Assembly (NCBI RefSeq): GCF_000143415.4 | Contig: NW_003314482.1 | Location: 42,825-50,919 of the forward strand | Reading direction: 5' to 3' | Source: Selaginella moellendorffii | Taxonomy: Eukaryota; Plantae; Lycopodiophyta | DNA length: 8,095 bases | Shown here: positions 3,681 through 3,783 of the stretch, one piece after another | Position numbering within the stretch: the stretch's first letter is position 1 | Layout: each line of letters begins with the position of its first letter | Made by a program: the position numbers and the translations under genes | Notes under the pieces: model-generated | Databases searched by the model: none | The model's input: the letters and a program-made list of their open reading frames with translations, nothing else | What the model was told of the DNA's origin: nothing

Positions 3681-3783
3681 CACTATCCCTACTATACTTT
3701 TGGAACCCCCTGCAGCCCCCCCCCCCTGGGAGACGCACGCTTTGGGCTTTCACCCCTTGACCCGTATTAGTATTTGGACTTAG
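3681..3783 (-). promoter_or_regulatory. LTR-borne copy of the rDNA Pol I promoter/initiation site (predicted +1 at 3690)
   Basis: The reverse complement aligns without gaps to 4976-5078 at 91/103 identity and includes AAAAGTATAGTAGGGATAGTG. Confidence 0.8.

Follow-up and report, generated by a model that had tools for sequence, protein, structure and literature searches.

A 2024 review of the relations between ribosomal DNA (rDNA) and transposable elements (TEs) lists, as TE parts that stem from rDNA, the 5S promoters of SINEs, Cassandra and Ajax, the spacer repeats of Pokey and a SINE derived from 28S (PMC10946416). The Cassandra TRIMs of plants and the Ajax and Helenus elements (Kojima 2024) carry the promoter of a host 5S or other small-RNA gene, outside the Pol II system, in their LTRs, and Cassandra copies have been reported to mirror changes in the 5S promoter of their hosts (bioRxiv 10.1101/2023.07.14.548913; review PMC10946416). 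The borrowing of a host rRNA-gene promoter by an LTR is thus already known for the 5S/Pol III system. Galadriel-lineage chromoviruses, such as TRRT of tomato, Beon of beet and Monkey of banana, are Ty3/gypsy elements that accumulate in 35S rDNA (PMC10946416, PMC2679016), and no promoter copy in their LTRs is described in PMC10946416 or in the TRRT paper (PMC2679016), the latter having 0 occurrences of the word 'promoter'. The piggyBac element Pokey of Daphnia also resides in rDNA and contains spacer-derived repeats (PMC3849761; PMC10946416 Table 2), and the non-LTR elements R1 and R2 depend on Pol I transcription of the rDNA. A 35S/45S Pol I promoter in an LTR is absent from Table 2 of PMC10946416, and a literature search of incomplete coverage found no such case elsewhere, which agrees with the first-pass annotation of the locus analysed here, whose author knew of no description of this arrangement.

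In the Selaginella moellendorffii locus, the promoter shared with an LTR would be the Pol I one. Within the window, by which we mean the whole stretch of 8,095 nt that was analysed, a Ty3/gypsy element occupies the minus strand of the rDNA spacer, ~930 nt upstream of the rRNA start, and its LTR contains a second copy of the block that surrounds the putative start site of the host (Table 1). That a high-copy gypsy family carries the host rRNA promoter core in its LTR, in sense orientation and at a plausible U3/R border, is well supported by the data presented below, and use of this copy by Pol I is the reading that we tentatively prefer.

Table 1. Coordinates of the element, of the host rDNA unit and of the modules common to both (positions counted from the first letter of the window).
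Feature	Position	Strand	Basis and remarks
gag / zinc knuckle / aspartic protease / reverse transcriptase / RNase H frame	2..2932	-	977 codons from ATG 2932; leaves the window at its start; integrase beyond the window
Leader intron, 66 nt, GT-AG	2966..3031	-	GTAAGC...CTTCTCCTCAG, GAG before it; X17 contig 28 joins 3032 to 2965
Primer binding site (PBS) TGGTATCGGAGC	2977..2988	-	3 nt past the LTR end; read from the sequence
5' LTR, 1,147 nt	2992..4138	-	TGTAAG...CTTACA termini; TG..CA ends, then PBS
LTR copy of the rRNA promoter block (~-100 to +13)	3678..3790	-	core 3756-3681; TATAGTAGGG at 3696->3687; start-equivalent A 3690
12-nt tandem array, sense GAGTCCGAGNTC-like	3791..4060 (LTR positions 80-348)	-	TRF period 12, ~15 copies
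84-nt spacer subrepeats rich in CCACGTGGC	4139..4460	+	TRF period 84, 3.8 copies, 95% matches; repeat-finder families D2-D6
Host promoter block	4969..5081	+	TATAGTAGGG at 5063-5072, putative +1 A 5069; 2,050 nt upstream of 18S
5' external transcribed spacer (ETS)	5069..7118	+	repeat-finder families D7-D11; high RNA-run depth
Short GAGTCCGAG-type repeat directly after the start site (+20 to +84)	5088..5152	+	repeat finder (I2, I9), TRF, blastn
18S rRNA gene, first half	7119..8095	+	Rfam SSU_rRNA_eukarya, 806 bits

The coding part of the element is a single minus-strand frame that stays open from 2959 to 2 (986 codons), and in its 977-aa product Pfam recognises Retrotrans_gag (173-259), zf-CCHC (365-381), RVP_2 (435-532), RVT_1 (679-838, 1.9e-39) and RT_RNaseH_2 (901-977). 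The resulting order of gag, protease, RT and RNase H, with integrase absent between protease and RT, is that of Ty3/gypsy retrotransposons, as is the arrangement of an LTR (4138->2992) followed by a PBS 3 nt on. The analysed sequence thus covers the element from the outer end of its 5' LTR into RNase H. We take the PBS to resemble the complement of the 3' end of plant initiator tRNA-Met, with one mismatch. In a protein similarity search, the closest proteins to the 977-aa frame were 38-43% identical and none of them was an angiosperm chromovirus; a search with the gag part returned no relatives, and an exact look-up of two LTR ORFs yielded no record. The 43%-identical relative (L001, GCA_030012885.1) was considered as a comparison copy and set aside, since it resembles the window in the RT only, lacks the block and lies outside rDNA. 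An exact-pattern scan with two parts of the block gave no match in metagenome contigs or prokaryote genome contigs.

At the outer LTR end, 17 contigs of a DNA run (X1) diverge just past 4138 with heterogeneous flanks (agreement 0.58), and because these flanks differ from one another, the LTR family occupies many sites. The first-pass annotation had described an autonomous gypsy element living in rDNA: an intact-looking Ty3/gypsy element does lie in the rDNA spacer, whereas, given the heterogeneous outer flanks of the LTR, the family need not be restricted to rDNA. Other parts of that description hold. The promoter-like block occupies LTR positions 349-461 of 1,147 in the sense of the element, with 686 nt remaining to the LTR end, and is thus located mid-LTR and aimed at the PBS and gag, as had been proposed. 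Likewise, the sense strand of the LTR contains no canonical TATAAA, and its sole TATA is the one inside TATAGTAGGG; an AATAAA-like hexamer was also not found on this strand. Judged from the sequence layout, the block lies plausibly where a U3/R border could be.

Plant Pol I initiators are of the TATA..GGG type, into which TATAGTAGGG fits. Upstream of the 18S gene, a motif of this type is present in the host block at 5063-5072, and the exact string has been used as the transcription initiation site of Avena rDNA (PMC5407837). For the transcribed part of the unit we used the assembled contigs of three studies (X15, X16, and X17), recorded as guessed RNA, and we treat them as RNA because the spacer is missing from them beside a well-covered ETS and because one contig is spliced. 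The ETS contigs end at 5169 (X15, contig 16, depth 1,988), 5049 (X16), and 5078 (X17), contig ends that do not fix 5' ends, and the spacer from 4361 to 4924 has zero contigs in all three runs. Given its distance from the 18S gene, its plant-type motif and the RNA-run coverage of the ETS without the upstream spacer, the plus-strand block is consistent with the promoter and start site of the host rRNA genes.

The spacer and the rRNA gene region have several further features. The insertion point of the LTR coincides with the edge of the first 84-nt subrepeat, and an A+T-richer stretch lies beyond the subrepeats, ahead of the block at 4969-5081. The CCACGTGGC palindrome, which is G-box-like, is dense over 4139-4880, with two copies per 84-nt subrepeat and scattered copies to 4870, and these copies make many short inverted repeats with 4568-4590. 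A plant-type telomere-like run (CCCTAAA, 2.9 copies) is found at 4596-4615 in the spacer and is preceded by degenerate copies. In the 5' ETS, positions 5590-6440 comprise three diverged repeats of ~340-380 nt, each beginning with GTCCGGATCCGGGCGGGCAA, which include a conserved 88-nt unit (5753-5840 and 6133-6220, 90%). The rDNA unit of the window reads A at 5319 where all RNA-like runs and most DNA contigs read G, and at 5443 it is one base longer than the RNA-run contigs and some of the DNA contigs; it may represent a minor, possibly silent, rDNA variant. Finally, the 18S gene departs from the eukaryotic SSU model near 8081, the local hit ending at 8088 (model position 974). The last bases of the window (~8081-8095) read TGTCCGCCCTG at a position where we would presume CATTAATCAAG, and this break may be the start of another insertion.

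Re-alignment within the 8,095-nt window reproduced the similarity on which the first-pass annotation was built: positions 3681-3783 of the minus strand and 4976-5078 of the plus strand pair without gaps and are identical in 91 of 103 columns, and the core (3756-3681 vs. 5003-5078, -66 to +10) is identical in 73 of 76 (96%). The identical stretch across TATAGTAGGG is present too, although its length had been understated at 25 nt, as the longest identical run comprises 30 nt (3710-3681 and 5049-5078). With the repeat finder, the pair was lengthened to 3678-3790 and 4969-5081 (113 nt, 87%). The similarity had been said to cover about -93 to +10, and it does end just past the initiation site, at ~+13 relative to the A at 5069 and 3690, but it reaches further on both sides, from about -100. 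The two blocks match with an E-value of 5e-34 in blastn, and the inverted match scores 137 bits compared to at most 30 bits for the best match from 30 shuffled windows, which rules out a chance likeness. The window contains exactly two occurrences of a 21-mer spanning TATAGTAGGG, compared to 0 expected by chance.

The differences between the two copies are unevenly distributed, with three in the 76 positions of the core vs. nine in the 27 distal positions (Fisher p 2e-4). Bases specific to the LTR copy include C for T at 3735 (sense) and CA for TG at 3712-3711. Because the distal part, at 18 of 27 identical positions (67%), still exceeds chance (p ~1e-4) and the core differs so little, the alignment indicates that the whole block is homologous and that the core has been held much closer to the rDNA version than the distal part. 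This unevenness could reflect either a common constraint on both copies, which would point to the Pol I initiation factors, or a later conversion that refreshed the core. In Arabidopsis, the minimal Pol I promoter reportedly extends from -55 to +6, a result attributed to Doelling and Pikaard in 1995. The better preservation of the core over a span matching the plant minimal Pol I promoter would fit a shared constraint. The LTR copy thus has the initiator motif in common with plant Pol I core promoters and spans the Arabidopsis minimal-promoter interval, but in contrast to them it belongs to a mobile element and is not followed by rRNA.

In the contigs, the core acts as a separate, sharply bounded module, since its edge (5003 in the rDNA, 3755 in the LTR) recurs as a junction in other contigs. 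Three further contig types touch the block. In a rare contig of the DNA data (depth 17), 4974 is linked to 5073 by CCAA in place of the block, and a contig of X16 follows the window to the end of the shared block at 5078 before continuing with 255 unlike letters. A 223-nt contig found in each of the three RNA-like runs has only the 34 nt from 5003 to 5036 in common with the core and carries unrelated sequence on both sides; its depth in X17 is 210, compared to 44 for the ETS contig, and it is possibly another LTR family or another abundant RNA.

The block is not the only module common to the LTR and the rDNA. The 12-nt tandem array of the LTR and the short repeat at 5088-5152 of the ETS are 74-76% identical in the same sense (blastn, E ~1e-7), and the array varies in length among the DNA contigs. 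Apart from the block and this array, blastn found the rest of the LTR to be unrelated to rDNA, and the LTR downstream of the block has no ETS counterpart. The order of the two modules differs, however, the array preceding the block in the LTR and following it in the rDNA. Therefore, a single collinear capture from the present rDNA fails to explain the layout, which counts against a simple capture. The layout could possibly stem from an ancestral or variant spacer in which the array flanked the start on either side, from two separate exchanges, or from the independent growth of a shared short seed. Subrepeats that flank the start site on both sides are common in plants (PMC8724763).

Several lines of evidence make the LTR copy a regular part of a high-copy family and not a local accident. 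In X15, contig 15 (3735-3924, no differences) runs from the block over its upstream border into the array, and in X16, contig 22 (3681-3924) likewise joins the block to the array while contig 21 (3463-3710) spans the downstream border. A total of 67,306 contigs of the DNA run X1 fall on the 4.2-kb stretch, 22,700 of them at at least 99%, 24,402 at 95-99%, and 20,204 at 90-95% identity, which characterises the LTR family as one of high copy number whose members are not all young. In several DNA contigs, 3756-3940 is missing (joints 3755->3941, 3947, and 3949), and these contigs represent LTR variants with a shorter array that retain exactly the 76-nt core. Together, the bridging of the block edges by contigs of independent samples, the high copy number and the retention of the core in length variants support this assignment. 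Only one of the best-supported DNA-run variant sites listed (3731) falls in 3551-3831, compared to ~25 in 3048-3550, although this scarcity around the block is suggestive only.

Contigs of the element are present in all three RNA-like runs at low depth (4-45). In X15, contig 14 runs unbroken and unspliced from 2861 in gag through the PBS and the LTR to 3666, a contig end rather than a start, which leaves 24 nt to the A at 3690 and lies 30 nt past the TATA at 3696. In X17, contig 28 (1,341 nt) covers 3607->3032 and continues directly with 2965->2203, which removes a canonical GT-AG intron with a pyrimidine tract from the leader. Spliceosomal splicing is normally coupled to Pol II, and because of this splice at least some of the element RNA is almost certainly made by Pol II. 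Since the LTR end and the PBS fall inside the intron, the spliced RNA is presumably a message that is unable to prime reverse transcription, and splicing of the leader may thus separate message RNA from template RNA. Further upstream, X17 has nothing on 3656-4924 and its element contigs extend no further. In X16, the LTR is deeper than the internal region, and coverage on the upstream side of the block (3783-3924) is as deep as on the downstream side; therefore, some of the X16 LTR RNA does not start at the block and has its source in solo LTRs, 3' LTRs or read-through. The leader between 3690 and the gag ATG measures 758 nt and contains eight upstream ATGs.

Taken together, we prefer the reading that the LTR copy is Pol I-competent and directs an RNA start at 3690, at least in copies residing in the nucleolar organiser, with a probability of roughly 45%. 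Under this reading, the module would have been derived from the rDNA spacer and retained in the family because it works as an LTR promoter, the Pol I initiation factors of the host would recognise the LTR core, and transcription would begin at the A of TATAGTAGGG, while spliced and translatable RNA would be supplied by Pol II. We favour Pol I competence because the copy covers and conserves the span sufficient for Arabidopsis Pol I initiation, and because the uneven divergence speaks for a constraint common to LTR and rDNA. A promoter role as such is also suggested by the block holding the only TATA of the LTR sense strand, by the retention of the core in length variants, and by the reach of the element RNA contigs, which extend to 3666 in X15 and to 3607, and no further, in X17. 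On the other side, the leader splice in X17 counts against Pol I use, as does the need for gag-pol to be translated, given that Pol I RNA is uncapped. To our knowledge, every autonomous LTR element studied so far is driven by Pol II, which also speaks against Pol I, and the equal X16 coverage on both sides of the block weakens the case for a start within it.

The most serious competitor, which we regard as somewhat less probable but still strong, accepts the same homology and origin and lets Pol II alone read the copy. The TATA in TATAGTAGGG would then act as a TATA box, the RNA would start at ~3666-3660 and be capped, spliced and translated, and the likeness to rDNA would reflect a recent acquisition or conversion. 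The canonical splice fits this well, and so do the general precedent of autonomous LTR elements, the lack of any other TATA in the LTR sense strand, and the X15 leader contig, whose end 30 nt past the TATA coincides with the expected Pol II start, although such an end differs from a mapped start. Pol II alone leaves unexplained, however, why -66 to -1 is kept at 96% beside 27 homologous nt at 67%, and the 20,204 DNA-run contigs at 90-95% identity do not describe a very young family. Moreover, a leader of this length with so many upstream ATGs is poorly suited to cap-dependent scanning. It is quite improbable that the block is a passenger without a promoter role, i.e. a piece of spacer that a master copy residing in rDNA gained by recombination, while transcription of the LTR begins elsewhere. 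Other TEs of the rDNA are known to have gained spacer pieces, such as the IGS repeats of Pokey (PMC10946416 Table 2), and the 12-nt array common to the LTR and the ETS indicates that more than a promoter was exchanged. Yet a passenger would hardly be expected in sense orientation at a plausible U3/R border, with a divergence pattern that favours the functional core and a core retained in the length variants, nor would leader RNA contigs be expected to come within 24 nt of the motif and not beyond in X15 and X17.

The direction of transfer could also be reversed, in which case concerted evolution would have spread an LTR fragment through the rDNA array and made it the present rRNA promoter of the host. 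The joint presence of the block and the array in both places and the breaking off of the window's own 18S near 8081, as in invaded rDNA, are compatible with such a history, but we consider it very improbable: TATAGTAGGG is the start-site motif of plants as distant as Avena and is more simply seen as ancestral to rDNA, the LTR beyond the block is without a counterpart in the ETS, and the arrangement of array and block in the rDNA is unlike that in the LTR. Finally, the two copies of the block are inverted and only 1.2 kb apart, which might raise the suspicion that a single local conversion, or an error in the assembly of this rDNA unit, produced the likeness. The first-pass annotation had named this as one of the cases that would undo its proposal, and it is scarcely credible in view of the thousands of DNA contigs on the LTR and of the contigs from two other samples and studies that join the block to the LTR (X15 contig 15; X16 contigs 21 and 22); these contigs contradict a one-off event and led us to reject an artefact of assembly.

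The preferred reading of a Pol I-competent LTR can be extended to a life cycle that relies on two polymerases, although we regard this extension as a speculative and improbable one. Pol I would transcribe from the captured promoter an uncapped, unspliced and full-length template for reverse transcription in which the PBS and the introns are retained, and from the same TATA-like motif Pol II would produce a capped and spliced RNA that lacks the PBS and is translated. If Pol I uses the copy, the element would be the first autonomous retrotransposon with a Pol I promoter of its own, and it would offer a natural system for studying how uncapped Pol I RNA feeds a retroelement life cycle, how TEs evade Pol II-directed silencing, and how fast-evolving rDNA promoters co-evolve with their parasites. 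Even if Pol II alone reads the copy, the locus documents the exchange of promoter modules between rDNA and LTRs, and it is a caution that promoter-like hits in such genomes may be LTRs.

R1 and R2 are promoterless and co-transcribed within the 28S gene, whereas the Selaginella element is a spacer insertion in antisense to the rRNA genes and has its own promoter copy; an R2-like co-transcription is ruled out by its location upstream of the rRNA start and on the opposite strand. Pokey shares with it the residence in rDNA and the possession of spacer-derived sequence, but is a DNA transposon in which the captured sequence is part of the internal region and not an LTR promoter. The Galadriel elements are likewise of the Ty3/gypsy type, but sit in the 18S gene, while the Selaginella copy is in the spacer, and the integrase, at whose C-terminus Galadriel chromoviruses have a chromodomain, lies outside the window. 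By analogy, the nearest relative in kind is Cassandra with its 5S/Pol III promoter in the LTR. Membership in a Cassandra-type group is ruled out by the open gag-pol frame and by the lack of a small-RNA gene in the LTR, where no 5S-, tRNA- or snRNA-like segment was detected (Rfam reports only the 18S at the gathering score and nothing relevant at E up to 1 in 2900-5300), and the likeness is one of analogy only. Cassandra, Ajax and Helenus are non-autonomous and have an internal Pol III promoter, in contrast to the Selaginella element, which encodes gag-pol and has a putative upstream promoter of the Pol I type. What links them is an LTR equipped with the promoter of a host RNA gene outside the Pol II system, and the conserved core described here would be the Pol I counterpart of that arrangement.
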